Position numbers and translations under genes: made by a program. From Anthoceros angustus (Eukaryota > Plantae > Anthocerotophyta): DNA of 64,000 nt. The stretch covers positions 1,612,001 to 1,676,000 of the forward strand of contig VJWM01000025.1 of assembly GCA_010909165.1 (NCBI GenBank), given 5' to 3'. The notes beneath the pieces were generated by a model. It was not told the DNA's origin, did no database searches, and saw only the letters and a program-made list of their open reading frames with translations. Position 1 is the stretch's first letter. Every line of letters starts with the position of its first letter. Below are positions 28,101 through 52,200 of this stretch, piece after piece.

Positions 28101-28338
28101 AAGTTTTGAGGAATGAATTCAAAGACGACTTTTTGGCCACGTTCTTTTCGGTGTCGAAAAGTGGATGCCAAATTTCTTCAAAACCATAAAGCGTACATGG
28201 TTTTACGGGACATGCTTTTTTTGATATGACGCCCAAAAGTATCAGCTTTTTGCCCATTTCAAAGCAAAATCCCTATTTAACATTGAATCAGCATTTTGTT
28301 ATAGAAGAACTTGCTATAAGAAGAACCAAGCTGTGAAA

Positions 28339-28591
28339 ATGGCTTCGGCAGACCACAAACGGCTCACAAGAGCAATCTGCGGGTGGCATTAAGTTCATAA
28401 GGAAGCTACCTTGCCTCCAAAGCTACTAAAGGACGGGATGAAATAGTTGGAGGCATCAAGAAGCCATGTCACCATCATCCCAAAGTCATGTCTCTTTGGT
28501 AAGCTCCTTGCAAGCATTGAGAGGAGGGTCATGTGTGATTGCTTTCTTTCACACATTCTTATTCTTAGTCACGTTCATTACATATAGTAGC
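28339..28591 (+). pseudogene. Histone H3 variant pseudogene: frameshifted exon 1 plus start of intron 1
   Basis: [22 protein letters not shown]|gtaagc; intron sequence closely matches intron 1 of the intact copy; intron resumes at ~42885-42930 after the gypsy element. Confidence 0.85.
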
Positions 28592-31500
28592 TGTGGACTA
28601 CGGACTTCCCTGGGGGGTTAGAAATTAGGTAGGGTTTTGTTTTTTTTCGTGGAGCCTAAGGATGTAAAATGAGGTGGCTAAAAAGGGGAAATGGTAGCAC
28701 CAAGTAGGTAGCACCCCTCGACAGCACTGAGTATAATCCTGGAAGCAGGAGTGAGGAACGATCAGGGCCACGATGGCGTGCATAAGTGGGCGTAATTCCT
28801 GACAAGTCCGGACTCCACTCCAGACCAAAGTGATAAGTGCGTGAAAGTAACTTAGAAGTTGGGCCGTGGACCCGACTTCAGGCGACGCCCACCCGAGTGG
28901 AGGACGGCATGCAATGGGTCGACCGTAATCCTTGCTGCAGAGTGGTATCACGCCGGACCCGCGCGGGCGAGGCCGCAGTACGCTGCCAGGCCGAGACGCG
29001 GCGAGTACGCCGCGCAGTAAGGCGAGGCTAGGTAAGCCATGTCATCTCCTCGCGCTACATTTGGAAGAGGGCGCCTCCCGCCCAATGCATATTCCCGGGG
29101 CTGTGACGCAGGAGAAGGCCAAGCACCGAGACAATTTTCCGCGATCTCTGCGCCTCCGCAACCGCCTCCATGTATCTTGTTGGACACTGACGCTCACAGC
29201 TCACCTCATTGAGGTTGGAGGCAACGCGGCAAGAAGGCCAACGCGCCGCCTCCTACCAAAGCTTAACCAAGGAGAATATTAAAAACCAGCCTGCAAGTGA
29301 AGTTTGGGAGCCATGGAACCTTGTGGAGCGCACATATCAGGACCCGCGCTTATCCGGACTTTTGGTCCCCGGCTCCGGAAGTGAGAATTGGTGCAGAGTG
29401 GCATTTGGATGTGTTCCATGTCCGGACATTTGGATGCTGTACCACTGGTCCGGAGTTCGCCCAAGATGCCGCGCGGCAATAAGCAATAAGGAGGTGCGTC
29501 CAAGAACCTCCTGGAGGACCCAAGGCGGCATGGACCTTGGAGGTCCCGAGGGCGCCTTACAACCTCCCCAAGGAGGAAGAGGGGTGGTGCCGAGCCCCTC
29601 AAGGCGGGGGAAGATAGGCCCAGCAGCCGGCGCTAAGGCTCGACGCAACGACCACCAACGTTGGTCGACATCCGACCGCTGACAATGAGGCGGTGGCCCG
29701 ATCATTGTCCATCGGAACCTACTCACCAAGGTGGATCACCTTGGTGATAACTGCTGGATTCCCCGCACGCTACCGCAGCTGGGGAAGAGGGCGGACCGGG
29801 AAGGATTATCTTCGCGCTTAGCTGTGAGGCTCGCAGACCGAGAAGCCTCGCCATCTGGGCCCCCATACCCGATCCATGTATGGGGCATTTCGAGCTCCTC
29901 AAGGAAGGAGAGCTTGAGCGCCCCGAAAGGACCGAGGCCCCGCCAAGTGGAGCGGCAAGGCCGAGGGAGGAGGCCGCAAAGCCAAACTGACTCGGAGGAG
30001 GACGACTGGAGGATTCCTGACTCCATACCCTGAACGGACCCCTCACCACCTGTGGAAGTATGGAAGAAATTCCCCGCCTCCTCCTTCCGTGCCCCAAGAG
30101 GCACAGAAGCGCCTGACCCCAGCAGCCGCCACTGCCATCACTCCTACCGAGGAGCCCCGCCGACTGTGAGGGAGAGCCAAGAGACGCAAGACCACGCACC
30201 AACGCTGCACCCCTGGGCCGGTGCCAAGATTCTTCCCCGCACCTGAGTGGCAAGAAGCGAGGAAGCGAAGGAGGGCGAAAGGACGCCAGGAGTGTGGAGG
30301 ACACCGGGCAGCCTGATCAGCCGGGTCCCGCCGGCCGATGTGAAGGGGCAAAAGGCTTGCTCCCGACTCCTCACCTCCTCCGAGCCCTGTGGAGGAAAAG
30401 GGCGAGAAGGAGCTCGCGCCAAAAGGGCCAAGGAGGGGAAGCTCCGAAGCCACTGACCCCGACATTAGGTCCGGAGAACCCACTGGACTTCCCGGACAAG
30501 GGTATGGAGGTCCTGACGACTGTGGAGATGCCGCCCGCCACGGACTTTGTGGGAGCCTCACTCAGCGGCCGGAAGAAACACGGCGGTCCTGCTACACATG
30601 GACGAATGCCTGGGGTCTGGGATGGCCGAGAAGACCTGTGGAGGTAGGCCACCCGGCAGATGGTGGAGCAGGCTGAGGAGCCCAGAGGCGAGGAAGGAAG
30701 GCGCTCGGATTGGAGGAAGGAGGCGAGAGGGAGGTCCGTCCATCCGCAAGGACCGGACTAAATTCCTTCACCGAGGAACACCAAGGGGCAAGGAGGCCCA
30801 AGCTGGGCGGAGGACCTCGCAGTGAGGGGCGAGCGCAGAAGCGAGGACGCCCGGCGCAAGGTAACGGGCGCGGATCCGCGAGGCAGCTGACCGACCAGAG
30901 CTGTCGAGAGGCTCGTGAAGGTGGCCAAGGAGGCGAGGCCACGGCGGCCGATCGCGATACCATCGTGATCGGAACCGGTGGAGGGAGGCCGAGAGAGCCA
31001 CGCCAATCAAGGCCGAGCAAGTGGTCATGAGCAAGCCGACAAGCCGAGGAAACATCGAGGCCAAGACCCGGAAATTGGGGACCCAGTGCAGAGGTAGAAG
31101 GAGGCGCAGGAGCGGGAGGACAAGAAGGACACCTTGGAGTTACAACCCAAGATGCGACGGAGCAAAGCAAGGAATTCTCAACGGGAGAATCCAAGACTTC
31201 GAAAGGTGAGATAGAGCGCCCAGCCCGCTCAAGATGGAGCAGGAGGTGGCGAGCAAGCGCGACCAACCAGCCCAAGAAGTCGCCACAAGGAGGTGGAGGA
31301 TCTCCGACTCGCCCGGGAGGTGCAGCGCGGAGATGGAGGAAGGAGACTTTGAGCCGCAAACAAACTATCATTGAGAGGAATGGTAGTTCAGAGACATCGC
31401 GAACGGAGATAGAGCTCCGGCCTGCTGGCGACGGAGCGAAGGCGACGGAGGAGCAGACGCCGAGATGGAAAAACCCGGTGAAGCGCACCGTGTTGCCCGA

Positions 31501-33089
31501 CCGTCTGGAGCGGGAGATGAGTTAACAATGGACAAGGAGGCGAGGGCGCCGGAAGATAAGAAGTCACCGTCCACCGAGGAAGGGAAGGCCGCTGCTATGG
31601 CGGGCAAGCGAACGGAAACGAGGAGTTGGAGCAGGAGCAACAATGACGCCATGGAGGTGACCGAGGCACCAAGGCAGAAGGCCTGCCCGCCTATCCAACT
31701 CGGGAGGTGGAGCAACAAGCGGGCAACAGCCCGCCCGAGCATCTATGGCGGGGAGACGCCCGGCACACGTGGAAGAGGCAATCCAGAAGTGGATTCGCCT
31801 GCTTACCACACCGAGCTCCCGGCGAGGCCTCTCACCACCGCCACAGACGGCCCTGGAAGGCCTGAGGGGAAGAAGGGCACGGACAGACAGGGACCCTAGG
31901 GGCCCTGCTTGGAGACGACGGCAAGGGAGGGAGCCCCGTGAGGAGCGGACGCAGGACCCCAAGGTAAGTTCACCACCACCCGATCCCAAGGGGGAGGGGC
32001 CCAGGGTGCAAGGGGAGCCAACCCGACCAAGGGTCGGGGTAAGGAGGAGGACCCCAAGACGAGGTCCAGGGAAGGGGTCCGAGTTTGAGATCGGACTGAG
32101 GCACGGACCCCGAGGTCCGAACCCGAGACGAGGCCGACCCACCGGTGGACTCAAATAAACCGACCTTGAGTTCAGTTCGAGTCGAGACCGACCTCGAGGT
32201 CCGACCAAGAAGGAGGAGTCCTCTCGACTTACGCTAGGAGCGACAATGGGCCCCACCGAGGGGGACCCACGGAAGGCGGGGAGGATGACGTTGTGGTAAC
32301 GGCTCGCCACCGCCAGAGCCCAACCCGATGTGATTCCGGAAAGGAGGGCCCCGCCGCGGATCATCCGATTGCGCCGATTGTCGGGAGATTGGACCACCAA
32401 GGCGAAGGACCTTCCCACCCACGGCGAAGGAGATAGGAGGAGGGAAATAGGATGGTAGGGCGATTAGCACCGAAATGGGCCTCACCGTAATAGGTGTAAT
32501 AAAGACGCCGACCGGCGTAGTATAAGAGGGCTAAGGCCTCAATAAATCATCTTTCTTGGTGTTGATGCCGCTCTGCACCTTGTGTGTCTTCGCTAACGTG
32601 AGTCCCGAGTCACCGAAAGGTGCACGACCCCGGGAGATTGATCGTGGTCCCGTGACGACCTAACGTTGTGGTGTGTGCTGGGAAGGGTGATCGGGGACCC
32701 GTGCTCGCCCGAGCACCCGACCGAACGGACCGGAACGTGTGAGCCGGAGGAACTCCGGAGGGCGGCAGCCCGGACGGAGAGGCCCGTGAACGACGGAGGA
32801 GGTCCGGCCGGTAACCCGCTTTTTCTAAGACCGATGAGTGTAGCGTGAGGAGAGAGGAAAGGACGAAGTGTGAGTGAAATGTGAACGATACGGACGCGAA
32901 CGGGTCTCAAACGCTTGGCCATACCGGCCTGACGGTGAACGCTAGAGTAGTTAGCGTATGTGCGAGACCGAACGGCGCAAAGCGAGGTAAGAATCACCAA
33001 ACGCCAAACGGAGTCTATCATTCCTTTGGGAACGACTTCCTTCACAACGACACGGATTGTGCGCTACCGCCATCACGAAAGTCGCCACA
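28592..33089 (+). repeat. 5' LTR, ~4.5 kb
   Basis: Starts tgtggact..ggggttagaaattaggtaggg and ends gaaagtcgccaca just before the PBS; colinear with 38467-42879. Confidence 0.9.
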
Positions 33090-33349
33090 TTTTGGCGCCG
33101 CTGCGGGAATGAAATCGCTCAGTAGCGCTGATGCGTGGAGGACGGAGGTAGTTAAGGAAGAATCAAGAGAGTCGGACGCCAGATCGCCGAGCGCCCGAGC
33201 GCAGCACGTGAGAGACGACGAGCTCGAGGAGGTCACACCGCAGGTGCGGTGGAGTTGTCGGATCGAGAGGAGGAAGCAAAGTCGTCGGGGCGGTTCCTCA
33301 TCCCTCGCCGCGATGATGGCAACAACGCGACCAAGATTCTCTCTGGAGT

Positions 33350-36300
33350 AAGAAGGAGGGATGCGAAACCTTCGTGGAGGATTTCGTGTCCCGAGCAAAC
33401 TTCAAGGTCCTGATGCACCATCCAAAAGGGTCCCGGGTGGCCCGCTGGTACCGGGAAAAATACCACCGCCGTAACGCCCCGCAACCTTCAAGATTGAAGG
33501 ATGCCTTCTAGAAAGATTCCGCGAATCGATCAAGAAGGCTACGCCTTGTCCAAACTTGAGAACCCAAAGAGGGAAGACGAGAAGTTGGGATGACATCGAA
33601 CGGTTCTACTGCTCCGGACGCACCCCACCCACACCACTACCATGCGGGCGTTGGTTCGCCTGGCTTATCCAAGCCAATGGCTAAGCACGCCGGCAGAGAA
33701 GATGTGAGCAAGGCGGGCGGAGAACTATGAAGAATCGATGCACCAACGACGAGGACTCCTCCAGGAGGAAAGAAGAAGAAAAAGAGGCTGACCAATCAAG
33801 ATGAAGAACCCTCGGAGGAGAGGAGGAAGAGACCGAGGTCACGGAGGAAGAGGAAGAGGACTCAAGAAGAATCCGAAGGAGAAGAAGAAGAAGAAAAAAG
33901 AAGAAGAAGCCCGTAGTCGGAGAAGAAGGAGGTCATGATGCCCGTGCGAGGTCTCGACCCACCTTTGAAGGAAGTAGCGGGCCGAGGGAAGATCTAGAAC
34001 GGTAATGAAGAGGTGGAAGAGTTGACGATCAACCGTGAAAGATCGTGAGCGACGCAAGGTGGCCACCACGGTCCGACTCATTTATGGTGTGCGGTGTGTC
34101 ACCAACATGGGCATGGCCAACCGCCTCCGCACTGGAACCGTGGAGTACGACTACGGGAAGAGTCCGAGGAAGGAGGATGCTTACCAAGTGCAAGAAGCCC
34201 AACCGGCCCACACGATGACGATCCCCGGAGTCCATCCATCGCCTCCGATGCAACCGCATGGAGGACCCCTTCTGAATTCTCGGGCGCGTGGTCTGGAACT
34301 GGGAACCCCGGACACTACTCCAACGCCCATACCCCACCGGCAAGGTAACGACTTTGAACGCCGGTGGAGAAGGGTGCGGGGCACATGGCAAGACTGGTCC
34401 GAATCCTCGCCGAGGACGGTGACGCCACGCAACCCCCCGGGGAGAGCCAAGACCACCGACGCCCTCCCGGCGGCGCCTGTACAAAATTGAAGACGACAAC
34501 CGGGCGGAGGGGAGGAGGCACCGAGGAGCTCGAACGAGGTGGTACGGGCAAGTTCGCCAAGGAGAAGAAGGCGGACTGAGGTACCGGAAGTGTCAACCCG
34601 AGTCGCCAAAGGAAGGAAGGAGACGCTTAAGAGGAAGAAAATGGGGATAGTCCCACGACGGAGGACGGAACACCCGCTGGAAGCCGAACCCGCCAAAGAG
34701 GACGAGTTAAACCGGCCCGCCAGGAGAAGAAACCAAAAGCCACCGGGAGTCTCCGGAGAAGCGGACTCACCTACGGCAACGCCGCAGTTTCCACCGGATG
34801 TGGTTCGGGAAGTGACCGAGATGCTTCAAGAAGAACTCCGACAGACCCAGAAGTGGTCCGGCCACCACAGCGCAGTAGCCAAACGCTGGAGGAGACAAGG
34901 CGAACGCGTGACGCAGCAGGAGAACCACCCGGCCCTTTCAAGGTGGCCGACTTGATGATGGACCAACAACACTTGGTGTCCCTTAGGCAGTTGTTAAAGG
35001 ACAACCCGGCATCGGCTGTGAAGTCCAAGGCCATCGTGGAAACGCAACCACGCCGGAACTCCTTGGTCCGGGCAAGAACGTGGAGGTAAGGGTCGATCTC
35101 ATACGGACTCGGGCGCCAGCAGTGGAAATTGCGGGTGTGTAATTAAAACGTGCCTCTAGACACGGGTCGAGTGAACCTCATCACCGAGGCCACCGCAAGA
35201 CGGCCGGGTTCACCACCTTCGAGCCATCCACCAAAACCCTCGTGGATGGCGGACATGTCGCGGCAGCGCCAGCAGGGAGTTGTCCCGAGTCCAAGCCACC
35301 ATAGCGAGCCCCTATACATTAGATTTCGTCATTATCGACCCGCCGGACTGGGTATGAGGTCCTCTAGCGGCCTTGGCCGGGCCTCGCTGACAAAACTACA
35401 CTTGAGAAGGAAATACACTTCAAGCCGTGGACTGGGATCCAAGGTGAGGGAAGGTAGCGACCGAGTAAGGACACATCGTGGAGAAACCAAGACCACGTAG
35501 GGGTACACCTCCGTCAAGACAAGGACGATGAGGAGAATGAGGACTACCCTTTCCAAAATCACGTGGTCGAAGAAGATGGATTGACGCCTTTGGAGCGAGG
35601 TGGACGAGGAGGTCATCGATTGTTTTAGGGTGGACTCCAAGTGGAACAAGAGCCGGGAAGGCAATCAAGAGGAGGGTCCAGAGAGGAGGGGAGTAGACCG
35701 AGAAGTAACCTTTCACCGACGAGCTCTTCCGGAGTGGGGAATGCGTGAAGATGAACCCTGATGGAGGACGGGCTGAAGCGAAAGAAGAGAAAGGGAGACT
35801 CAACCCGACGATGTGGAAGACGTGGAGGTTCGCCTGTGGAAATTCCTCAAATTCGCAAGGGCATGCCGGAGTTAAAACAAGACCTCACGCTTGTTGGGGA
35901 ATTCAGGGTGTTTGCTTTCAAGGTCACATATGAAAGGCATTCAAACAAGGCGAACACCGGATAGATTCGAAGCCGTGAGCGGCCTGCTCGGATTAGGCAA
36001 GATAAATCAATCCCAAGCACTCGCCAAGGTCAAGGAAGTCCCGGATAAGTATCCGGAAGCGACATCATCTTCCCAATCGTGAATAGTGGGTGGCGCCCAT
36101 TGTGTCGCGGCCAAGAAGCGCAGGGGCATTCGGGTCCGTCAGAGGAGAAAGCTTAACGCCGCCACTAAAAGGACCATTTCCCATGCCCTTTGTGGACGAC
36201 ATCGACAAGGTGGACGAGTACCTACTCCTTCTTGACGGCCACTGGCCATACAACCAGCACCTAAGGGAGCTCTGACCGATAAGACAACATTCACCACGGA

Positions 36301-38260
36301 GGGACGCTTGCCTACAAACGGAGTGCCTGGATGACAGAGCACCCGGATCATTTATGCGATGGTGACCAATGTCTTCCGGAATTCGAGGGACTTCATGGAG
36401 GTGTTCTGACGACTGTGTGCACGGAGAGGAGGACAAACACGTGGACATTTGCGGAAGTGTTTGGAACGATGTAGGGAGACTCAACTGTGCCTGCATCCGG
36501 AGAAATGCTACTTCGGCATGACAGAGGGAATCTTGTTGGGGCACCGAGTGTCGGCAAGAGGGATAGAGGTGGACCAAGACAAGGTGAAAGTCATCCACCC
36601 CTCGCAGCCCACCAACGAACTTGAAGGAGTTACGGGATTCCCGGGCATGGTGGGTTACTATAGGCGTTTCATACAAGATTTTGCAAAGCGGCCTGTGCTA
36701 ACAGAGCTACTCAGAAGGAGGAGGAATGGACCGACGCCGAGAGGGAGGCGGCATTCAGAGACCTCCGCACCACTGTCGGCCCCAAAGATCAAAGGACCGG
36801 ACCGGGGAAGCGATTCCATGTGTACGTGATGTGTCACCGCCATCGGGTAGTGCTCACCAAAAGATGATAAACGAGGGATCACCCAATCTACTACGCTGAA
36901 GACACACGCACGCGAACGGAGGTACACTACTACGAGCGAGAGAGGCATTGGGAATGGTATACGCTAAGAAATTGCACTACCTTCCGCCCAATGAGTTTGT
37001 GTTCTATGTTGATCACTACCAAGCACTTTGGTGAACAAGGCCGACTTGTCTGGACGGATTATAGGTGGATTCTGCCAGGAGTTCACATTTGAGGTGGAGA
37101 CTAGGCAAGGAAGCAACACCAAACGCCGACTTCTTGTCCAGTTAAAGCGAGCCCCCGCAGGATCAAGAGGACGCCTTCCGGATGAGGAATTGGTGGCGAG
37201 AGGAGGAGGTAGAGGAGCAACCGACAAACCCTAAGTCAGGGCGGACCCACGGCGGGGAGAAGGGAGCGACGGGGCCCTCTTACGCGGAGTTGGAACGGTA
37301 CCTATGGGAGATGGAGCTACCAACGAATCGAACCGGGTCCAAGGCAGCCTTTGTGCACTACGCCGCCTTTCCTCAGTATAACTGCATCTTTAAGGTGGGC
37401 CGACGTGGAACGAAGGTACCCAACAAAGGAAACGGAGGTGGTAATAAAGGGGATGCAAGGACTAGGTGGTGGACATTATGCAACAGTCACCACCAAGAAA
37501 ATCTTGAGGTCGGGTACCGTGGCCCACCATGTATGGGGAAACACACCAATTGTGAAGAAGTGTGATGCTTGTCACGGATCGGAAGCCGACCACAACTCAA
37601 TGGCCGTTAGTGCCCATACTAGCACTAGCGCCTTTTGAGAAGTGGGCATCGACTTGCTGGACCTATACCAACCACCGTGCACACACGTAAGCGGTACATC
37701 TTGGTGGCAACGACCATCGCACTGTGGGTGAAGCGCTACTAGAACGGACTCGCGAGCACGGTGGCCAAATTCCTCAAAAACATCATCACAAGGTATGTCC
37801 GCTGTACCGGTGAAGCGATAGGGGAACCCATTTCCTCAATGATGTGATAACTGCAATGACGGACTATTTCGGCATCACACATCGTAAAACGGCCCCCTAC
37901 AATCCGAAGGCCAACGGACTGACGGAGAAGACCAATGGACTTATCTGCCGCATCCTCAATAAGCTGACGGTTAACTATGCGCACGACTGGGATACAAAGC
38001 TGCCATCGGCGCTATGGGCGTTCAGAACGGCAGAGAAGGTAACCACGCAACGAACTCCGTATTATCTGACCTATGGGCACTCACCCGTTATGCCGGTCGA
38101 GTTTGAGGTGCCAACACTCCGAGTCATGATGGAAAGGCGCTTAACGGATGAAGAGAGCCAACCGGAGCGTTGCTAGGGTTTTGTGCAAAGATACGAGGAC
38201 CGGAAGAGGCGCAATAAAAATCGTAATCAACGCAAGCCGTGGCATGATAGCGCCAGAATC
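33350..38260 (+). pseudogene. gypsy gag-pol remnants
   Basis: Protease PLDTG (35159); RT DHFPMPFVDD, GYNQ-like, KCYFGMTEGILLGH; RNase H HPIYYA; integrase PKANGLTEKTNG..WDTKLPSALWAFRT. Confidence 0.93.
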
Positions 38261-38466
38261 GTGGAGTATGTGAAGGAGGGAGATCCGCCTCCTTACGTAC
38301 CGACATATGCACTTCCTGTAAACTCCACCTACGATGGATGGGACCTTACCAAGTCGACTATACCCCAATGGGTCCGCTCAGGCTTGGATGGTGAACCGCC
38401 CACGGTGAACGGATGGCGGTGAAAAGTACTTAGTGTTGGCGAGACGCCAACAGTGAGAAGGGAGTA

Positions 38467-41400
38467 TGTGGACTGACTTCGGGGTTAGAAATTAGGTAGG
38501 GTTTTGTTTTTTGTAGGAGCGAAGGATAAAATGAGGCTAAAAAGGGGAAATAAGCATGTTAGCACTCGGACGACTGGAGTACTCCGACCGGAGTGAGGAA
38601 CGCATCAGACCTACGGCGGCGCGCACGGTAACGGATAAGTCCGGACCCACCTGTGACCAGCAGATAAGTACGCCAGGAAAGTAACTTAGAAGTTGAGCCG
38701 TGAGGGACCAGGCGACGCCACGCGGACGACCGAGTGGAGGACGGCATGCACCGGGTCAGACCGTGAATCGCTGAGGCCGAGGCAGTATTCACGCCCGCTG
38801 ACCGCGCGGCGTAGGGGCCGAGGCACGCGCGTAAGGCCGCAGTACGCGGGCCAGAGGGGCCGAGTAAGCCATGCACTCGCCACGATGTGGAAGAGGCGCC
38901 TCCCCGCCGCATTCCCGGGCGTGGTCGCGGAAGGTCACGCGCACCGAGACACGCGATCTCGCGCCCGCAACCGCCTCGGTATCTCGTGACACTGACGCCT
39001 GCTCACCGCTGAGGTTGAGCAACGAACGCGGGCGAAGGGGCGCTGCCAGCCTCCCGCTACAGAACCAAGGGAGGAGAAGGCGATGGCACCCAAAAGCCCG
39101 CGGAAGTTTGGGAGCCATGGAACCTTGTGGAGCGCAACATTGTGACCCGCGCTATCCGGACTTTGGGCCTGCCCAGGAAGCGGGAGAATTGGTGCAGGAG
39201 TGGCATTTGGATGTGTTCCATGGTCCGACATTTGACAAGGTCACCGTCCGGAGTTCGCCCAAGATGTCGGTCAATAAGGAGGTGCGGTCCAAGAACCTCC
39301 GGAGGACCCAAGGCGATGGACCTTGAGGTCCCGAGGCGCCTACAACCGCCCAAGGAGGAAGAGGGGGTGGTGCCGAGCCCCTCAAGGCGAAGGGAAGATA
39401 GGCCGCCACAGCCGATGCTAAGGCTCGACGCAACGACCACCAACGTTGGTCGATATCCGACCTGACCGAGTAAGGGCGGTGGCCCGGATCATTGTCCATC
39501 GAACCTACTCACCAAGGTGGATCACCTTGGTGATAATCTGGTATTCCGCACGCTACCGCAATGGGAAGAGGGCGACCGGGGAAGGATTATCTTCGCCCTT
39601 AGCTGTGAGGCTCGCAAGCTCAGACCGAAGCCTCGCCATCTGGGCCGCCCCCCATACCGATCCATGTATGGGGCATTTCGAGCTCTCAAGGAAGGAGAGC
39701 TTGAGCGAGCGCCGGAAAGGACCGAGGCCCGCCAAGTGGAGCGGCAAGGGCGCCGGAGGAGGAGGCCGGCCGAAACCAAACGGACGGAGGAGGACGATCG
39801 AGGATTCCGACTCCATACGCCCTGAACGGACCCCTCACCACCTGTGGAAGTATGGGAAGAAATTCCCGCCTCCTCCTCCGTGCCCCAACCAGCACCCCCA
39901 GCAGAAGCCCCGACCTGCCCCCGCCACCGCCATCACTCCTACCGAGGAGCCCGCCGACTGTGAGGGAGCCAAGAGACGCAAGACCACGGCTACCAACGCT
40001 GCACCCGGTGCCAAGACTCTTCCCCGCCACTGAGTGGCAAGAAGCGGAGGAAGCGAAGGAGGGCGAAGGGACGCCTGTGGAGGAGGACACCGCAGCTGAC
40101 CCAGAGCCGGCCCCCCGAAGGGCAAAAAAGGCTTGCTCGACTCTCACCTCCTCCGAGCCCTGTGGAGGAAAAGGGCGAGAAGGAGCTGCCAAAAGGGCCA
40201 AGGAGGGGAAGCTCCGAACCACTCGTGACCTAAGGGTCCCGATTAGGTCCGGAGAACCCACCGACTTCCCGGACATGGTATGGAGGTCCTCGACGGACTG
40301 TGAGATGCCGGCCCCACGGACTTTGTGGGAGCCTCACAGGCCGTGGAAGAAACAGGGTTCTCATATGGAGAATGCCTGGGGTCTGTGGGATGGCCGAGAA
40401 GACCTGTGGAGGTAGCCACCCGAGGCGCATGGTAGCAGCCTGAGGGCCCAGAGGCGAAGGCAAGCTCGGCCGGATTGAGGAAGGAAACGCCGAGGCGAGA
40501 GGGAGGTCCGTCCATCCGCAAGGACCGGACTAAATTCCTTCACCGAGGAACAAACAAGGGCAGGAGGCCCAAGCGCTGGCGGAGGACCTCCGCAGCAGGG
40601 GCGAGCGCAGAGAAGAGGACGCCCGGCGCAAGCGTAACGGGCGGATCCGCGAGGCACTGACCGACCAGCAGCTGCGAGAGGCTCAGTGAAGGTGGCCAAG
40701 GAGGCGGAGGCCACGGCGATCGCGATCACTATCGGATCGAACCGTGGAGGGAGGCGGCCGAGAGAGCCACGCCAATCAAGGCCGAGCAAGTGGTCGGAGC
40801 AAGCCTGACGAGCCGTAAACATGGAGGCCAGACCCGGGAGATTGGGGACCCTGTGCACTGCAGGAGGTAGAAGGGAGGCGCAGGAGTTGGAGGACAAGAA
40901 GGACACCTTGGAGTTACAACCCAAGACGTCGGAGCAAAGAAGGAATTCTCAATGGGAGAATCCAAGACTTCGAAAGGTGAGATAGAGCGCCCACGCAAGA
41001 TGGAGCAGAGGTGGCGGAGCAAGCGCGACCAACCAGCCCAAGAAGTCGCGACAAGGAGGTGGAGGATCTCCTGACTCGCCCCGGAGGTGGAGCAGGCGGA
41101 GATGGAGGACCGCAAGGAGACTTTGAGAGCCCCAAACTATTGAGAGGAATGGTAGTTCAGACATGGTCGCGAACGCGAGGGAAATAGAGCGGCCCGGCCT
41201 GCGGAGAGCGAAGGCGATGGAACAGGAGCAGGACGCCGAGATGGAAAAGGGCTGGTGAAGCCCGCAGTCAGGTTGCCCACCGTCTGGAGCGGAGATGGCG
41301 AGCACAATGGACAAGGAGGCGAGGGCGCCGAGGCGAGAGGGAGGTCCGGTGAGGAAGTCGGGGAACGCCGCTGCTATGGCGGGTGGCAATCTCGAGGAGT

Positions 41401-42879
41401 TGGAGCAAGTGGAGCAGGGAGGCGGAGGTGACCGAGGCACCTACTCGAGAAGGCCCACCTATCAATGGGGAGGTGGAGCAACAAGCGGGCAACAGCTCAC
41501 CTCCGAGCATCAATGGCGGGGAGACGGTGCCCGCACACGTGGAAGAGGCAATCCACAAGTGGATTCGGACTTTGCCTATTACCACACCGAGCCCCGGGCG
41601 GAGGCCTCGCCGCCAAGCCCGGCCTGAGGGGGGAAGAAGGGCACGGAGACAGGGACCCTAGGGGCCCTGCTTGGGACGGCAAGGAGGAGCCAAGAGGAGC
41701 GGACGCATGACCCCAAGGTAAGTTCACCACCACCATCCGCCAAGGGGGTGAGGGGCCTGCAGGGGTGCAACCGGGGAGCCAACCCGACCAAGACAAGGGT
41801 CGGGTAAGGAGGAGGACCTAGCAGACGAGGTCCACAGGAAGGGGTCCGAGTTTGAGATCGGACCAGAAGGCCGGACCTCGAGGTCCGAACCCGAGACGAG
41901 GGGACCCAGGCCTGGAGAAATAAAACCGACCGAGTTCAGTTCGAGACCGACCCCGAGGTCCGACTCCGAAGAAGGAGGAGCCCCTCGACTTACGCAGGGG
42001 AGCGAGGGCACCGGAGGGGACCCACGGAAGGAGGAGGATGACGTTGTGGTAACGCGGCCGCCGACCGCCGAGCCCAACCCGGCTGTGATTCCGGAGGAGG
42101 GGTCCGCCTCGCGATCATCCGATTGCGCGCGCCACGCCGTGACGGGAGATTGGACCACCAATCCCAAGGCGGAAGGGACCTTCCCCCACCGCCGCGAAGG
42201 AGATAGGAGGAGGAATAGGATGGTAGGCGGCCGACAGTAGGCATACCGAAATGGCCTCACCGTAATAGAGGTGTAATAAAGGCGCCGACCGGTAGTATAA
42301 GAGGGCTAAGGCCGCCGAATAAATCATCTTTCTCTTGGTGTTGATGCTGCGCTCTGCACCTTTGTGTCTTCTGCTAACGTGAGTCCCGAGTCACCGAAAG
42401 GTGCACGACACCCGGGAGATTGATCGTGGTCCCGTGACGGACCTAACGTGTTGTGGTGTGTGTGTGGAAGGGTGATGTGACCCGTGCTCGCCCAGAGCCG
42501 CGCCCAAAGACCGAACGGACCGAACGCGGTGAGCCGAGGAACTCCGGAGGGCGCAGAGCCGGACGGAGAGGCCCGGAACGACGGGAGGAGGTCCGGCCGG
42601 TAACCCGCCTTTCCTAAGACCGATGAGGAGTGAGTGGAGAGAGGAAAGGACTGGAAGTGTGAGTGACGAATGAACGATACGGACGCGAACGGTCCCTAAA
42701 CGCTTGGCCATACCGGCCTCAGATGAACGCTAGGTAAAGGCGATGTGTGCGGCGAACGAGCGCAGTGAGGTAAGAATCACCAAACGCTGCAAACGGAGCC
42801 TATCATTCCTTGGGAACGACTCTTCCTACAACGACACGGGATTATGCCTGGCCGGCCATCGCCGAAAGTCGCTACTACA
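38467..42879 (+). repeat. 3' LTR, ~4.4 kb
   Basis: Follows the PPT; colinear with the 5' LTR with many small indels. Confidence 0.88.
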
Positions 42880-42939
42880 AGATGGCTTGTACTCAACGAT
42901 CATAAGACTTACGGTGCTGTGTGTACCAAACCAGATCCT

Positions 42940-43107
42940 GAGCCAGAAAAGCATTATAAATCTTTTTATCACGACCTTTATATTACAAAAGTGTTACATT
43001 TTTTGAGGATTGGAAATACAAACGAAAACCATAACAAACCACTATTATATGTATGCTCAAAAGTGTAACAAAAAAGCATAATAAAAACCCCCTTGTTTCT
43101 AGTAGTG
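42940..43107. mobile_element. CACTA-type element right-end fragment
   Basis: Ends ...ttctagtagtg (reverse complement CACTACTAGAA) after an AT-rich subterminal tract; left boundary approximate. Confidence 0.6.
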
Positions 43108-43878
43108 CTATGCTTTTGAAGATTGCATTTCTTAAGTCGCCTAACTAATGAACATGGACTAGGCTGTTGTCCTTGCTTAAGCTTGAGTCTTCACTTATAG
43201 ACTCAGATTGCGTATCGGACATGGATTATTTGCAATAGTTCTTTCATTCAAGGTGTCACATATTGCTTTTTTCATATTATAAAAATATAATGAATATATT
43301 TGTGTATAAAGTCTAATAAATATATTATATTTTCTTCCATAATTAAGTCGTCTTTCAAGGCCACTTTTAGGTGTTGCTTTGATGTAACAAATGTTGTTGC
43401 CCATGGTTTCAAGTAGAGATCCCTCGATTAACATGTTTGACTTGCATGCATCAGGCCATTAGAGATGCAATCTCGTGTCTACCTAAAGTAGTAGCACAAT
43501 GAAGAAAGTTAATGAATCCTAATGAAGCCTAAGTAACAAAATATATGAATCTAAACAAAACGATGTTTTAACGTTGCACCAAATTCATGTGAGCTTCTCT
43601 TTTCCTTTGGAAATGCAAAGCCTTAAGTTATATGGTCTTAATTACGAGGTTGCTAACTTGGAGCTGAGATAGCCCGGGCTTATAACATCTACAAAGGTCA
43701 TGTCTGACTCTTGTAACATGTTCACACGGTACGCAACACATGGCTAATTTAGTGTAATAAAATGGAATGGCCATTTCCCCTTAATTAATGTTGCTGCAAT
43801 GTACAAAAGTCATGATTAATTCCATGCTCATGAAAACTGTAATTATTCTACAAGAAAGGTCTTCCAAACAATTCATCG

Positions 43879-44666
43879 CTATCTTTCTTGTGATAATCTC
43901 TCTCCACGAATGCGTCTTGCCAACTGCATGTCTTTAGGCATTATGGTGACCCTCTTAGCATGGATGGCGCAAGTGTTGGTGTCTTCAAAGAGCCCTACAA
44001 GATACGCTTCACATGCTTCTTGAAGGGCAAGAATTGCATGGGTCTGAAATCGCAAATCCGCCTGTAGACATGCACATGTCCCAACAAGTCAAGCAAAGTT
44101 AGAACTTACAACAAAGATAGTATAAAGCATAATATTGCTTATTACAAATGGTTATTCATGTATCATTTTATAAAGAAATACAACAATTCTAGATACCAAC
44201 ATGTAACATTATTATAACACTAAACCAACACAAGAGAGTGCTTATTATGCATCACCTTATACTCATGCGCAATCTCCTTCACCAAGCGTTGGAAGGGCAA
44301 CTTCTGGATTAATAGATCTGTGCTCTTTTGGTACTTCCTTATCTCACTGTACAACATGTAACACGTACAACACATATCACTGTAAGTCTTACGATCGTTT
44401 AGTAAAAGCTAATGTAAGTAAAGAGCGTGACCGAGTAGTTTCTCATGCATGCACAAAGAATATGTGAAAGAAAGCAATTACACATGACCCTCCACTCAAT
44501 GCTTGCAAAGAGCTTACCGAAGAGACACGACTCCAAGACGATGGCGACGCGGCTTCTTGATGCCTCCAACTATTTCACCCCATCCTTTAGCAGCCTTAGA
44601 GGCAAGTTGCTTCCTTGGACCTGTGCCACCGTTGCTCCTGCGAGCCATTTGCTTGGTGCGAGCCAT
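43879..44666 (-). CDS. Divergent H3.3-derived histone H3 variant, 140 aa, 3 exons (44666-44518, 44346-44256, 44061-43879)
   Basis: Intact spliced [147 protein letters not shown] introns at R49 (phase 2) and K79 (phase 0). H87/L90 plant H3.3 signature. Confidence 0.92.
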
Positions 44667-44690
44667 AGTATACGCTTGGAATGAGCCAAA

Positions 44691-44831
44691 GTTCTTCTTA
44701 TCCAATGATGTGAAGTCTCTTCTAGAGTGAAAGCTTTTACTTAGACCCAAAAAGGGTATGAACCAACGTTCTTCTTATCCAGTTATGTGAGGTCTCTTCT
44801 AGAGTGAAAGCTTATACTTAGACCCAAAAAG
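44691..44831. repeat. ~64-bp direct duplication (period 77) upstream of the H3 variant
   Basis: gttcttcttatcca..atgtga.gtctcttctagagtgaaagctt.tacttagacccaaaaag at 44691 and 44768. Confidence 0.85.
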
Positions 44832-44868
44832 CTAGTAACTTCTGGATATACATGTGCCCAACTAGTGC

Positions 44869-44875
44869 ATATATA
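44869..44875 (-). promoter_or_regulatory. Possible TATA element of the H3 variant
   Basis: TATATAT on the minus strand about 200 nt upstream of the ATG; position only. Confidence 0.25.
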
Positions 44876-45046
44876 GTCGTCAGGATCTTAGGCACGAGAA
44901 TATTTTCTCGAGAAGAAAAAAAATATAAATAAATTATCCATTACTCTAATTAGCAAAATGAAAGTGGCAATTTCTCTAATTAACAAAATGAGAAAGTGGC
45001 TTTCTTCCCGTTGGATCTGGTGGACTAGATATGGACGTGGCCTACT

Positions 45047-48000
45047 GAGTATGTCTAGGGGTGCGTTCGGGCGAAGCGGCTAAGCTCCAGTTCATGTGCG
45101 AAAACATCTCTAGGATCATGTCGTGAAGGGCCAAACTGGATTTGACTTGACATTGGAGGATGCTAATTGGAGCTGGAGCTGGATCAAGCCCTTAGCGATT
45201 AACGGTGCAAAGGTATTGCTCTTCCTGGCTAAGGCTGGGCTACACTTGGCGGCCGGCATTGGGGGTGCGGTTCCAAACCCTTCTACCAGTTTGGATGGAG
45301 CGGTTTCTATCGTTGCGCTTGGATGGAGCGGTTTCTCTCGTAGCCCTATCCGATTTGAATCTGGACCTGACAGGACCAGCTGCGAGCCAGAACACTCCCG
45401 TGCAAGAGGCAAGAGGCATGGATCGCTCTGAAGAATCTCGTGCAGCCCTTGCTAAGGGATCAAATGGCCGAGAAAGCGTTAGTGGCCAGGAATGGCATCT
45501 TGCTCTGCACCTTGAGTAATGATGTCGAGTATATGGCTGTTAGAGCTCTATTTAGGGCACGTTTCAACAAATACTCTAATATATATTAATTAGGTTACTG
45601 AGATATCATTAATTATAGTAGATTCAGTTTATAACCGCTTTGTGTGTTCACCCCTTGACTTGTTCATTCTCTTAATTGTATCATAGCGTTCTTCGTGTAT
45701 GCTTCCGCTTGTTGATGTTTGACATGGTATCAGAGCCGTGCAAATCTCTGATTGAAATATATTTCCCACAAAGGAGATGCTAACAACATGGCCAGACAAG
45801 GTAGAAAGAGTTCAGGGGATTTCACAAATTGTTCCCCAGCTTTTATCTACCGTGGCCATGGAAACCCTGCTAGAGCACCAAAACCTCAGAGGCAAACACC
45901 TGTCTAGTGTATATGTGATCCAAGGCCCCTCTGCACACCCAACAGGAGACATTCCTCTAATGATTCCTTGCAGGCCATTCAAAGTCAGTTAGAACACATT
46001 GAAGGCCGTCAATTACAAGTACTTGCTTTCTTACAGCACTTCGAGAAATATCATCGATTAGCCTCCTCCAACATGGTGAAAATGATTACTCGGCAGTGAA
46101 ATCATTAATCAAGACAAATCGCATTCCAATTAGAGCAGGAAGATCAATCAACTTACTTTAGCTATCATTCGCAATTCCTCTAGTTCATCCACAAAAGTAA
46201 AAGACAAGCACTTAGCTAATGATGATTGCTACCCAAGATTCCATGTGTAGAAGATTTCTAGCTAATCTCTCCGTAGCTAGTCGTATTTCGTGTCTAGATT
46301 CGACTAGATAAAAGCGCTAGGCCCTCTGGATGTGGTCTCCACCCAATCGAGATTATAGACCATTAACAACTAGGAAAAACCACACCACCACTTATGGCTG
46401 GATCAAGTTATGCGGGATCCAGCACCACCAGCACCACCACCATTAATAATACATATAAATATGACTTCAAGGAAAAAGACAGGTTTGCTGGAAGTGAATA
46501 CAACATCTGGTCAATGCGGATGCGATGCATCTTTGAAGACAGCGACTTGTGGGACGTTGTCAATGGTACATATGCTAAACCTACAGCAACCGGCACAAAT
46601 GCAATACCAGCATCCGACATTGCAGCATGGACCAAAACAGATAAGAGAGCAAGGAATGTGATCCTCTCCGGGTTAGATAGGAGTACTGCTCATCACATCA
46701 TAGGTGCCGTAAGTGCAGCTTCAGCTTGGTCAAATCTCAAGCAGCTGTACGAATCTATGGACGCAATGAGTAAACTGAATGTAACCAGGGCATTTTATCA
46801 TCAAGATGAGTGAAACGGACACCGTCGCTGAACATATCAAATTGTTCAGGACAGCCAGAGCAAGATTAGCATCATGCGGCACAAATTTGGACGAAAGCCA
46901 AGCAGCCATAGCTTTGCTTGGCTCTCTCCCTGACAGTTACCACACATTCAAGACGACACAAAATGGTGTTCCCAAGCAAGCCACTCTTGCAGCAAAGAAG
47001 TCACCTGGACAGCCAATTGATTTCTCTATCTCAGAGTTGGTCGGAGCCCTCATGGAGGAAGAGGTCTCAAGAGGCCTGCCAGACATCCAATGCTGGAGCC
47101 AAGGAAGAGCCCTCTTTGTGGTCAGAGGAAGAGGAAGAGGAAGAGCACGAGGCCGTGGACGTGGCCCTCACGAGTATGTCTAGAGTGCGTTCGGGGCGCG
47201 GCTAAGCTCCAGTTCATGTGCGAAAACATCTCTAGGATCATGTCGTGAAGGGCCAAACTGGATTTGACTTGACATTGAGGATGCTAATTGAGTGGAGTGG
47301 ATCAAGCCCTAGATTAGGTGCAAAGGTATTGCTCTTCCCGGCTAAGGCTGGGCTACACTTGGCGGCCGGCATTGGGGTGCGGTTCCAAACCCTTCTACCG
47401 GTTTGGATGGAGCGGTTTCTATCGTTCGCTTGGATGGAGCGGTTTCTCTCGTAGTCTCTATCCGATTTGAATCTGGACTGACAGACCGAGCGAGAACACT
47501 CCTGCAAGAGGCAAGAGGCATGGATCGCTCAAGAATCTCGTGCAGCCCTTGCTAAGGGATCAAATGGCGAAAGCGTTAGTGGCCGTGAATGGCATCTTGC
47601 TCGCACCTTGAGTAATGATGTCGGTATATGGGTCAGAGCTCTATTTAGGCACGTTTCAACAAATACTCTAATATATATTAATTAGGTTACTGAGATATCA
47701 TTAATTATAGTAGATTCAGTTTATAACCGCTTTGTGTGTTCACCCCTGACTTGTTCATTCTCTTAATTGTATCATAGCGTTCTTCGTATGCTTCCGCTTG
47801 TTGATGTTTGACATGGTATCGAGCTGCAAATCTCTGATTGAAATATATTTACAAAGGAGATGCTAACAACATGGCAGACAGTAGAAGAGTTCGTGGATTT
47901 CACAAATTGTTCCCCGCCTTTTATCTACCGTGGCTATGGAAACCACTAGAGCACCAAAACCTCAGAGGCAAACACCTGTCTAGTGTATATGTGATCCAAG

Positions 48001-49232
48001 GCCCTCTCAGACACCCAACAGAGACATTCCTCTAATGATTCCTTGCAGGCCATTCAAAGTCGCTTAGAACACATTGAAGGTCAATTACAAGTACTTGCTT
48101 TCTTACAAAGACCAGAAATATCATCGATTAGCCTCCTCCAACATGGTGAAAATGATTACTCGAAAACAGGCTGAAATCATTAATCTGCACAAATCACTGT
48201 TCCAATTAGAACAGAAGATCAATCAACTTACTTTAGCTATCATTCGCAATTCCTCTAGTTCATCCACAAAAGTAAAAGACAAGCACTTAGCTAATGATGA
48301 TTGCTTACCCAAGATTCCATGTGTAGAAGATTTCCTAGCTAATCTCTCTGTAGCTAGCTGTATTTCAGGTCTAGATTCAGACTAGATACAGGCGCTAGGC
48401 CCTCTGGATGTGGTCTCCACCCAATCGAGATTATAGACCATTAACAACTAGGAAAAACCACACCACCACTTATGGCTGGATCAAGTTATGCGGGATCCAG
48501 CACCACCAGCACCACCACCATTAATAATACATATAAATATGACTTCAAGGAAAAAGACAGGTTTGCTGGAAGTGAATACAACATCTGGTCAATGCGGATG
48601 CGATGCATCTTTGAAGACAGCGACTTGTGGGACGTTGTCAATGGTACATATGCTAAACCTACGGAAGCGGCAAATGCAATACCAGGATCCGACATTGCAG
48701 CATGGACCAAAACAGATAAGAGAGCAAGGAATGTGATCCTCTCCGGGTTAGATAGAGTACTGCTCATCACATCATAGGTGCCGTGAAGTGCGGCTTGACA
48801 GTCAAATCTCAAACGGTATGCGAATCTATGGACGCAATGAGTAAACTGAATGTAACCAGGGCATTTTATCATCTGAAGATGAGTGAAACGGACACCGTCG
48901 CTGAACATATCAAATTGTTCAGGACAGCCAGAGCAAGATTAGCATCATGCGGCACAAATTTTGACGAAGCCAAAAAGCGATAGCTTTGCTTGGCTCTCTC
49001 CCTGACAGTTACCACACATTCAAGACGACACAAAATGGTGTTCCCAAGCAAGCCACTCTTGCGGAAGAAGTCACCGGACAGCCAATTGATTTCTATCTCG
49101 TAGTTGGTGGCCCTCATGGAGGAAGAGGTCTCAAGAGGCCTGCCCAGCACATCCAATGCTGGAGCCAAGGAAGAGCCCTCTTTGTGGTCAGAGGAAGAGG
49201 AAGAGGAAGAGCACGAGGCCGTGGACGTGGCC
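45047..49232 (+). repeat. ~2.1-kb tandem duplication of flank + LTR + ORF0 + 5' gag (45047-47171 and 47172-~49232)
   Basis: Both copies begin gagtatgtctag; both contain the AATGA TSD, LTR, PBS and gag up to the RGRG tract. Confidence 0.92.
47860..48385 (+). pseudogene. Extra ORF (ORF0) upstream of gag in copia 3 (second copy at ~45777-46308)
   Basis: Coiled-coil-like QAEIINLHKSLFQLEQKINQLTLAII followed by DDCLPKIPC; frameshifted. Confidence 0.45.
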
Positions 49233-52200
49233 GTGGCCGTCCTCCATATGGCAGTCGACCACCATCTGCAGCACCACGAAGGAAAGGGAGCTGTCACTGT
49301 TGTCAAATAGAGGGACATTATGAAAGAGAATGCTGACGGAAAAAGGCTGGTGAGCCTAGGAGAGGTAACCCTGCCAATACTAACGTTATTTTGAGAACAC
49401 ATTTTGAGAAAAATACTTTACAACGTAATCTACAACAAGGGAACCACGTCATCGCATGCTATTGTAAATGGCTTCCAATCATATTTTTGTGATTAATGAT
49501 GTTAATAAATATTTTTAGAAAAATAAAGATCAAATTTTGAAAAAAAGGCTTTTACAACGTAATCTACAACGTGGCAACCACATCATCAATCCGTTGTTGA
49601 AAATGAGCACCCAAAAGAGTGCCACATCATCCAACTAGAAACCCCCCGTTGTAAACCGAGTCTTAAAACTGGCCACATCAGTGAAACTTAAATTTACAAC
49701 GAAGGTGTTTAGATGTTGTAAAGATTGAGAGATTTGCAAAAGGGGTTTTGTAAAACACCCCTCTCCCTAGTAGTGAACATAGTACAAAAGCCACCTGTAC
49801 TTCTAGCTGTCTACCTAGTTACCTCCCAGAATGATATGGCTAATTGGTACTTTGATAGTGGTGCCTCTGCATACATTTGCCATACAAGATCATACTTTAC
49901 CTGTTACATACCTAGTCAGCATGGCAGCTTTGTTTTCCTAGGTGATGATAGTGGTCTGATTGTCCAAGGTCGAGGCACAATTCATCTTAGGTGTGCAGGA
50001 GGTGAGATCCTGCAACTTGATGATGTCTATCATGTACCTCAGATGGCCAAAAATCTGTTATCTATTAAACAACTAACTCTTTCAGGAAGACATCAAGTTC
50101 AATTTACTAGTCAGCTATGTGCTATGTGCAGCTCGCCACCAGTTTGCATTTGTGAAGGGAGACTTTTACATTCATGACCTTTATTGTCTTGAGTTAGAGT
50201 CTGCTCCAGTCTCCAATCTTGCACGATTTTCAAAAACACAGTTATTAGCCTTGTCCGGCACTGTCGGCTTGCTCATGTCAATTCATGTAAACTCATGAAA
50301 CTTAGTCTTGGCAATCTTTACCTAGATAAGATACCTGCTTTGTCTGATGTCCCTTTCTATGAGAGTTGCGTTTATTCCAAGAGACGAATGTCCCCTTTCC
50401 CTATCGGACTTGCAACCAGACCCACAGATCCGTTAGATTTAGTTCATACAGATCTATGTGGCCCTATGTCATGTCCATCCTTCAGCCATTCGTTGTATTT
50501 CATGCCGATCGTGGATGATGCCACGAGAATGACTTACATCTGTTTTTTGAGACACAAGTCAGAAGCCGTGGACAGATTCAAGGAGTACATGGATATGGCA
50601 GAACGCCAATTGGGCACTCGACTAAAGGCAATTAGAACACATGGCAGAGGTGAATTTGTATCAGGTTCCTTTACACAGCTTTGTATATCGAAGGGCATAC
50701 TGATGCAGAGGAGTGTACCTTATTCCCAGGCGCAAAACGGGGTAGTTGAGCGGTGTCATCAGTGGCTTGTTGAGGCTACTCGCTCAATGCTTCATAGTGC
50801 AAATTTGCCCAAGACCTATTGGGTAGAAGCGATCTTAACAGCCACTTACTTGAAAATTGCCTTCCCACTTCAGCAGTTGACGACATGACACCCTACCAGG
50901 CCTGGACAAGATGCAAACCCTCCTTATTGCATCTACGAGTGTTTGGAGCACCTGCATATTCACATATACCTAAGCAACTGCGTCAGAAATTGGATCCGAA
51001 GGCCACCAAACTTCTTTTTGTCGGCTACACGGAAGGAATCAAAGACTACAAGTTGGTGCATCCCCAAACTCACCGGATTACATATTCGAGGAGTGTTGTT
51101 ATCGACGAACAATCTCTGCTGTTCAGCAGCAGTGGGAGAGATTTGAAGAACTTGCAATGGCATCTGAACCAGCAGAACTTGTACAGGTTGGTCCCTTGCA
51201 ATTGGATTCTGACAATGCAGACATGAGTGGGAGTGATGCTGACCAACAGCTGTCACTTTGGGATTCCAAGGACAGTGGGAGCACATACTGTCCTGTGGCC
51301 AAGACCTAATCGCCTTCACACCCCTTGCCATACCGCACTAGCTCCCCGCAACATGCGGGCCAACCCCACCGCAAGACCTCCTCATACTCCTGCAACGCTC
51401 GGTCCAGTAGATCAGCCTCAGTCCAATCCGCACAGCCTCCTCCCAACCCTGCAGCGCCTCCTGCGCCTGCAATGCGTCGCTCCACAAGGACGCGCAGACC
51501 CCCAACCTGGCTTGAGCCATACCACCTTGGAGATGCTCACGCAACCTCAGGGGAGGGACGCGCCTCCTCGCGTGCAGCATCTAGGCACACATCTGGCCAC
51601 ACGCCTCATCTCTCACACCCAGAACTTGCTCAAGCCTCATCAACAAACCCCGTTTCTGCGCCCGTTTCTACACCACCCTTTTCAAATACCCAAAATACCA
51701 ATTCTATTGCTGCCTCTTTATCTAATTTAGAAAATGAATCTAGTTTAGATGTTAACTCATTAACCTCTGCCTCTACTTCACTAGTCCAAGCTTCTATAGC
51801 AGCTACTGACCTTATTGAACCTGCTACCCGTGAAGAAGCATTGTCTGGAACTGATAAGAGAAGTGGGAGGCAGCTATCTTATCAGAATATAATAGTTTGA
51901 TAGAAAATAAAACTTGGGAACTAGTTAAACTTCCTAGTGGTAGGCAACCAATTAAGTGTAAATGGGTATTTCGTATTAAGTTGATAGCCAACTTCTGGGA
52001 GTTGATTATCACGAGACTTTTTCACCAGTAGTTAAGTTGCAGACTATCAGATACTTGCTAGCATTAGCAGTAGAGTTAGATTTAGATTTACATCAAATGG
52101 ATGTTACTACTGCTTTCCTATATGGAAAATTAGAGGAGCTTATCTATATTGAACAACCAAAGGAGTTTATAGATCCTAAAACTAAGGATTTAGTTTGTCT

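Follow-up and report, generated by a model that had tools for sequence, protein, structure and literature searches.

A probably functional H3-like histone gene derived from H3.3, with K9, K14 and K27 all replaced

Does the small histone gene at positions 43879-44666 of the window (the whole stretch of DNA analysed here, 64,000 nucleotides long) encode a working H3 that has given up K9, K14 and K27, or is it what remains of a duplicate that has fallen silent? A sequence-only reading had described an unbroken spliced ORF with GT-AG introns at R49 and K79. Exact splicing of the locus reproduces this structure, and the tail sequence quoted in that reading is exact. Judging from the features described below, we put at about 0.6 the probability that the gene is a functional, selected, protein-coding “H3-like” H3 derived from H3.3.

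Gene structure and descent from H3.3

The gene lies on the minus strand and consists of three exons separated by GT-AG introns:

44518..44666, minus strand: exon 1, 149 nt, begins with the ATG and stops after the second base of the R49 codon; codes for the divergent N-terminal tail
44347..44517, minus strand: intron 1, 171 nt, GTAAGC...ACAG, 39% GC, phase 2, splits the R49 codon
44256..44346, minus strand: exon 2, 91 nt, residues E50-K79, αN to α1/L1
44062..44255, minus strand: intron 2, 194 nt, GTGATG...ACAG, 30% GC, phase 0, after K79
43879..44061, minus strand: exon 3, from A80 through the remainder of the histone fold, with A135L and SQER last; the TAG stop is at 43881-43879

The spliced coding sequence of 423 nt encodes 140 aa and contains no internal stop. 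The Pfam Histone domain (PF00125) matches exon 2 (E 2.5e-9) and exon 3 (E 8.7e-23), and H3 chains of the PDB are matched by exon 3 at E ~1e-28 and by exon 1, the tail, at E ~2e-12. Our reference was the canonical plant H3.3 protein P0122 (136 aa), from a cluster (P0111/P0122) of 1046 members; canonical H3.3 hardly varies across angiosperms. The variant has an H3-class histone fold, aligning with H3.3 at 77% identity over 135 residues (405 nt) with no indel. A CenH3/CENP-A identity was rejected because the tail and loop 1 are of canonical length and the tail aligns end to end. Weak Pfam matches to CENP-S and CENP-T (E 2e-4 and 1.4e-3) fall below the family cut-offs.

The differences from P0122 are distributed along the protein as follows:

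Residues 6-35: T6M, K9R, T11N, K14T, A15G, T22S, R26K, K27G, S28W, A29G, P30E, T31I, T32V, V35I
Residues 39-78: H39R, Y41H, P43L, T45V, A47S, E59D, R63Q, R72K, Q76H, D77E, F78Y
Residues 80-135: T80A, S86T, V89I, A96C, L109T, I124M, A135L, followed by the 4-aa extension SQER

K9R, K14T, K27G, S28W and the extension had been listed in the sequence-only reading and are all present, but that list undercounts the changes, which total 32 replacements. Both ARKS cassettes are destroyed, reading ARRS at 7-10 and AKGW at 25-28. Residue 27 is a glycine (codon GGA), which makes the variant a K27-less H3 of the H3.15 type. The retained residues include K4, S10, K18, K23, K36, K37, K56, K79, K122, H87 and L90. 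The alignment to P0122 thus agrees with the earlier claim that K9, K14 and K27 are lost while K4 and K36 are kept. The accompanying claim that sites of active marks are retained holds in a formal sense only: both lysines are present, but their flanks are changed, by T6M next to K4 and by P30E, T31I, T32V, V35I, H39R and Y41H around K36. The canonical stop has been lost; compared with the 3′ ends of H3.3 genes, a minor lesion in the last codon seems to be the cause, with the frame running five codons into the former 3′-UTR.

Intron positions were compared with ten genomic loci that encode canonical H3.3 (L003-L012), each reconstructed by exact splicing. In all ten the coding region is interrupted three times, by a phase-0 intron following nt 72, a phase-2 intron following nt 149 and another phase-0 intron following nt 240. 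The two introns of the variant agree exactly, in site and phase, with H3.3 introns 2 and 3 (nt 149 and nt 240), and the first coding intron of H3.3, that at nt 72, is cleanly absent from exon 1. Two Poales loci (L001:3001-3517 and L002:3001-3509), which also encode canonical H3.3, show the complementary loss: they retain the nt-72 intron alone and lack the two introns still present in the window variant. Members of the H3.3 family have thus lost introns independently and in complementary fashion. The public annotation of these two loci (P0125, 133 aa) is mis-spliced and drops three residues.

Plant H3.3 is recognized by T31, Y41, H87 and L90 together with coding introns (PMC4357034, PMC12591220). 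The variant reads I31, H41, H87 and L90 at these positions. A single base change separates I31 (ATA) from the T31 codon of H3.3, and likewise H41 (CAT) from its Y41 codon; at least two are needed in either case to reach the H3.1 codons for A31 and F41. The derivation from H3.3 proposed earlier is therefore upheld by the matching positions and phases of the introns in ten H3.3 genes and by the retention of H87 and L90. Since positions 31 and 41 read I31 and H41, the variant is counted as “H3-like” and not as H3.3. H3-like proteins are defined as departing from the H3.1/H3.3 consensus at positions 31, 41, 87 and 90, often with a degenerate tail (PMC4357034). The I/H/H/L combination, K9R, K27G and the heavily replaced tail all fit this description. 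On these sequence characters, the variant is H3.3-derived, yet belongs to the H3-like class by published criteria.

A dead partial duplicate and the constraint on the fold

A tblastn search of the window with the spliced variant protein identified a second fragment at 28410-28496 (plus strand). It belongs to a partial duplicate, here called psi, which is interrupted by an old nested element:

28317..28591, plus strand: left part of psi, consisting of exon 1 preceded by ~20 nt of 5′ flank and followed by the 5′ portion of intron 1
28592..42881, plus strand: nested element of ~14.3 kb, inserted in psi intron 1
42885..42924, plus strand: right part of psi, 40 nt that align at 85% identity with 44409-44370 in intron 1 of the variant

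The nested element carries 4.5-kb LTR-like direct repeats (28592-33088 and 38467-42875) that are 80% identical. Exon 1 of psi is broken by three frameshifting gap events and one stop. Homology ends ~25 nt short of the position of exon 2, and exons 2 and 3 are absent. Psi is inverted relative to the variant gene and would lie ~950 bp beyond its stop once the nested element is removed. Ten derived residues are common to psi and the variant (T22S, R26K, K27G, P30E, T31I, T32V, V35I, Y41H, T45V and A47S), and the nt-72 intron is missing from psi as well. The special tail therefore predates the duplication.

The introns of psi and the variant differ by a K2P distance of 0.165 over 129 nt. Neutral rates in plants are commonly ~0.7-1.3e-8 per site per year, and at such rates the split is estimated to be several million years old. 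In the well-aligned half of exon 1, the two copies differ by 15 transitions and 0 transversions; six of the differences are at CpG sites, and these six CpGs, decayed in psi, stand intact in the variant. With H3.3 as the outgroup, the same half of exon 1 shows one clear replacement in the variant since the split (P43L) and 7-8 in psi.

The replacements that separate the variant from H3.3 are not spread uniformly, with 17 of 43 positions replaced in the tail and 15 of 92 in αN and the fold (Fisher p=0.005). In residues 44-135 they are conservative: their BLOSUM62 scores average +0.93, and random nonsynonymous single-base substitutions in those codons average -0.35 (p=0.002). At least 39 base changes in the variant are nonsynonymous, and none of its changes is a stop or an indel. 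In a neutral simulation, in which mutation was run until 31 residues differed, 21% of runs had no stop; at indel-to-substitution ratios of 0.05-0.1, only 0.2-2% had neither stop nor indel (P=0.002-0.02). In pairwise comparisons with every H3.3 CDS, dS is saturated (≥1.7) and dN is 0.16-0.21, so these comparisons yield no omega specific to the branch of the variant.

These tests show long-term purifying selection on the histone fold of the variant; they speak for past constraint, and such signatures are compatible with recent silencing of the gene. The earlier reading had offered selection or recent origin as reasons for the clean ORF. Selection finds support in the age of psi, in the non-uniform and conservative replacements, and in the neutral simulation. 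Recent origin is excluded by the psi/variant divergence and by the saturated dS against every H3.3 CDS, and it also conflicts with the derived tail that both copies share.

The same reading had set the clean ORF against neighbouring transposable elements (TEs) riddled with indels. This contrast is real, but part of it is suspect. The repeat pair 28592-33088/38467-42875 has 283 gap openings and 360 mismatches, and the pair 45032-47166/47156-49232 has 58 gap openings and 59 mismatches. In both pairs the gaps are mostly of 1-3 bp, there is about one gap per substitution, and transversions equal or exceed transitions. TEs that decay biologically seldom look like this, which suggests that the small indels in the repeats of the window are at least partly errors of an unpolished assembly. 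The contrast with the TEs is weaker evidence because the repeat indels look partly like assembly noise; the other selection tests are independent of it.

Surroundings, relatives and competing readings

The variant gene has the nested element on one side and a tandem repeat on the other. The island left between them measures 2.2 kb (42925-45031) and includes only ~365 bp of unique sequence upstream of the ATG. The nearest features upstream are:

44678..44831, minus strand: two tandem 77-bp units, 91% identical, ending 11 nt upstream of the ATG
45032-47166 and 47156-49232: 2.1-kb tandem repeat, 93% identical, TE-like

The 77-bp units are probably 5′-UTR or proximal promoter, and a TATATAT lies just upstream of them (~44866-44872). 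Farther upstream is a tandem 30-bp pair (80% identical, 44931-44990); together, the 77-bp units and the 30-bp pair account for the greater part of the unique 5′ flank, which is short.

The elements CCACGTCC and GATCCAACG occur 24 nt apart at 45009-45041 (minus strand), ~350-374 nt upstream of the ATG, and resemble the hexamer and the nonamer found in promoters of replication-dependent histone genes of plants. We rejected this pair (hexamer at -374, nonamer at -350) as evidence, because the window has as many one-mismatch nonamers as chance predicts, the hexamer is itself part of the 2.1-kb repeat unit, and the canonical H3.3 loci lack both hexamer and nonamer. No promoter motif is shared among the canonical H3.3 loci L001-L012. 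A scan for bacterial-type promoters was set aside as irrelevant to a plant gene, and an Rfam scan of the window gave no match.

Elsewhere in the window, remnants of copia-type retrotransposons with gag and RVT_2 domains are located at 3826-7248 and 52037-52891 (plus strand). A lipoxygenase gene with PLAT and Lipoxygenase domains (~56649-60006, plus strand, 59% GC) is 44% identical to its best full-length match; in two libraries, the best matches that span most of its ORF show 40-49% identity, and short fragments reach 64%. An apparent frameshift near 59396, within one continuously aligning exon, reflects either a pseudogene or an assembly indel. The last ~94 lipoxygenase codons and the 3′ flank are contained in a 730-bp tandem duplication (59731-60460/60484-61213, 99.7% identical), which either arose very recently or was produced by the assembly.

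Searches for relatives of the variant returned canonical or unrelated H3s. A search with the tail (window:44517-44774:-, region 37-86) among 5.8 billion protein clusters, with proteins of 47-150 aa as candidates, found none that shares it and returned only two unrelated H3s (P0001 and P0002). A profile (A2) built from a scaffold H3 and the three exon peptides of the variant was scored against 8000 candidates, a ceiling that may have kept relatives out of view; among the best 120, none is closer to the variant than H3.3, and the matches are multi-domain or canonical H3s. A metagenome scan with exon 1 yielded canonical H3s only, at 67% identity or less. The tail occurs in none of the annotated proteomes of wheat, durum wheat, Aegilops, barley, Festuca, Eragrostis, rice species and sorghum. 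Exact look-ups of eleven ORFs from the window (exon 1, the lipoxygenase ORF and nine others) in the protein collections found none of them. As even ORFs of the window itself are missing there, these blanks are weak evidence on the source genome.

A grass H3.3-like protein of Eragrostis curvula (P0133, 136 aa) has an altered tail of its own, PRKMLHAVAARKTAPATGGVKKPRRY..., and keeps K27, H87 and L90. Lineage-specific tail variants of H3.3 therefore recur in grasses.

It is possible, if on the doubtful side, that the gene is an H3.3-derived duplicate that was long constrained and is now an unexpressed pseudogene, a silent relic in TE-rich and probably methylated chromatin. Its place between TEs, with a TE-like tandem repeat beginning 365 bp upstream, would suit such a fate, and the neighbours on record are a dead partial copy and a frameshifted lipoxygenase gene. 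The intact reading frame after so many nonsynonymous changes, the spared fold with its conservative replacements, the CpGs kept where psi has lost them and the two intact pairs of splice sites all weigh against long neutral drift; they do not weigh against a very recent silencing. The loss of the canonical stop (A135L and SQER) could be a small lesion of the 3′ end, and the variant is missing from the protein collections searched. There is also precedent in maize, where expression atlases show no signal for many H3-like genes, which are suspected pseudogenes (Cui et al. 2015, PMC4357034).

We consider it very unlikely that the locus is a copy captured by a TE (Pack-MULE, Helitron or CACTA), or the arm of an inverted repeat that yields small RNA against H3.3-like genes instead of protein. 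With the nested element removed, read-through into the inverted 5′ fragment of psi could form a hairpin of ~200-330 bp, and the surroundings are TE-rich. However, the arms are only 82-85% identical and now lie 14 kb apart, and no terminal inverted repeats or other TE termini were found around the variant gene. Unlike typical captured fragments, the gene is complete as a coding unit, from start to stop and with its two introns in place, and the signatures of selection act on the protein.

That an assembly or sequencing artefact, be it error mistaken for divergence from H3.3 or a chimeric locus, produced the variant is scarcely credible: the indel-laden repeat pairs and the lipoxygenase frameshift are compatible with unpolished long-read sequence in places, but the variant differs from H3.3 by substitutions only, ten of its derived residues are independently present in psi, and the differences between the two copies in the well-aligned part of exon 1, all transitions, follow a biological pattern of decay.

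Comparison with known H3 variants and possible consequences for chromatin

Compared to plant H3.3 (Arabidopsis HTR4/5/8; P0122), the window variant has in common its overall sequence, introns 2 and 3, H87, L90, K4, K36, K56 and K79, and differs by its replacements, the C-terminal extension, the absence of T31 and Y41, the missing first intron and the lack of K9, K14 and K27. Atypical plant “H3-like” genes were reportedly described by Okada in 2005 and by Ingouff and Berger in 2010. The window variant resembles these genes in deviating from the consensus at positions 31/41/87/90, in its degenerate tail and in its substituted K9 and K27; it differs from them in that K9, K14 and K27 are lost together, both ARKS cassettes are gone and the fold is well conserved. 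H3-like plant genes with substitutions at K4, K9 or K27, with or without introns, are numerous, and the intron-containing rice gene Os02g25910 carries K27M (PMC4357034).

The closest functional parallels are two Arabidopsis variants. Both dilute Polycomb marks once deposited: H3.15 (HTR15, K27H) removes H3K27me3 during callus formation, and H3.10 (HTR10/MGH3), which keeps H87 and L90, resists K27 methylation in sperm (PMC10426802, PMC7410336). Like these, the window variant is related to H3.3 and has a tail that is unable to carry K27me3. It also lacks K9 and K14, which is not reported for H3.15 or H3.10 (PMC10426802, PMC7410336). Whereas those two have been characterised experimentally, the window variant is known from its gene sequence. 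Its origin is almost certainly independent of theirs.

Mammals have testis- or primate-specific H3 variants (H3T/H3.4, H3.5 and H3.Y) whose substitutions change nucleosome stability (PMC7410336). These are likewise lineage-restricted and carry few to many substitutions, and they differ from the window variant in their independent origin in animals; the PDB matches of the variant exons include H3t, H3.6 and H3mm7. H3T/H3.4, H3.5 and H3.Y keep K9 and K27.

If the gene is, as we favour, a functional H3-like gene, its history would have begun with a DNA-level duplication of a replication-independent H3.3 gene, followed by loss of the first coding intron and then by divergence mainly in the N-terminal tail. 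The protein is predicted still to pair with H4 and to enter nucleosomes. HIRA recognises H87 and L90 (PMC10426802, PMC7410336). Deposition would probably follow the H3.3 route (ASF1/HIRA), because both of these residues are kept. S86T and V89I flank residues of chaperone recognition and, with the αN changes, could impair assembly. At the DNA entry/exit segment, H39R, Y41H, P43L, T45V and A47S probably alter the wrapping of the DNA ends.

Nucleosomes containing the variant would allow neither methylation at K9 or K27 nor acetylation at K14, and phosphorylation would be precluded at T6, T11, S28, T32, Y41 and T45. The ARKS cassettes that chromodomains would read and that SUVH- or PRC2-type enzymes would write are gone. 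Wherever it is deposited, the variant would be expected to dilute both H3K9me2 and H3K27me3; in Arabidopsis, H3.15 has this effect on the K27 mark. That it might erase repressive marks, whether in gametes, during regeneration or in TE-rich chromatin, is conjecture. The most specific form of this idea, a lineage-restricted and selected H3.3 derivative without K14 and the K9 and K27 ARKS cassettes, which the H3.3 pathway would place in one particular cell type (gametes, zygote, endosperm or regenerating tissue) and which would wipe out H3K9me2 and H3K27me3 together, strikes us as unlikely. Such a dual eraser, if real, would be a single protein going beyond H3.15 and H3.10, which deal with K27 only.

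As it stands, the gene is one more well-documented case, intact, old and constrained, on the long list of plant H3-like genes. If expressed and incorporated, it would give rise to chromatin unable to carry either heterochromatic H3K9 methylation or Polycomb H3K27 methylation. It would then provide a natural test of what follows when both marks are impossible on one nucleosome, and would be a candidate tool for reprogramming or regeneration.
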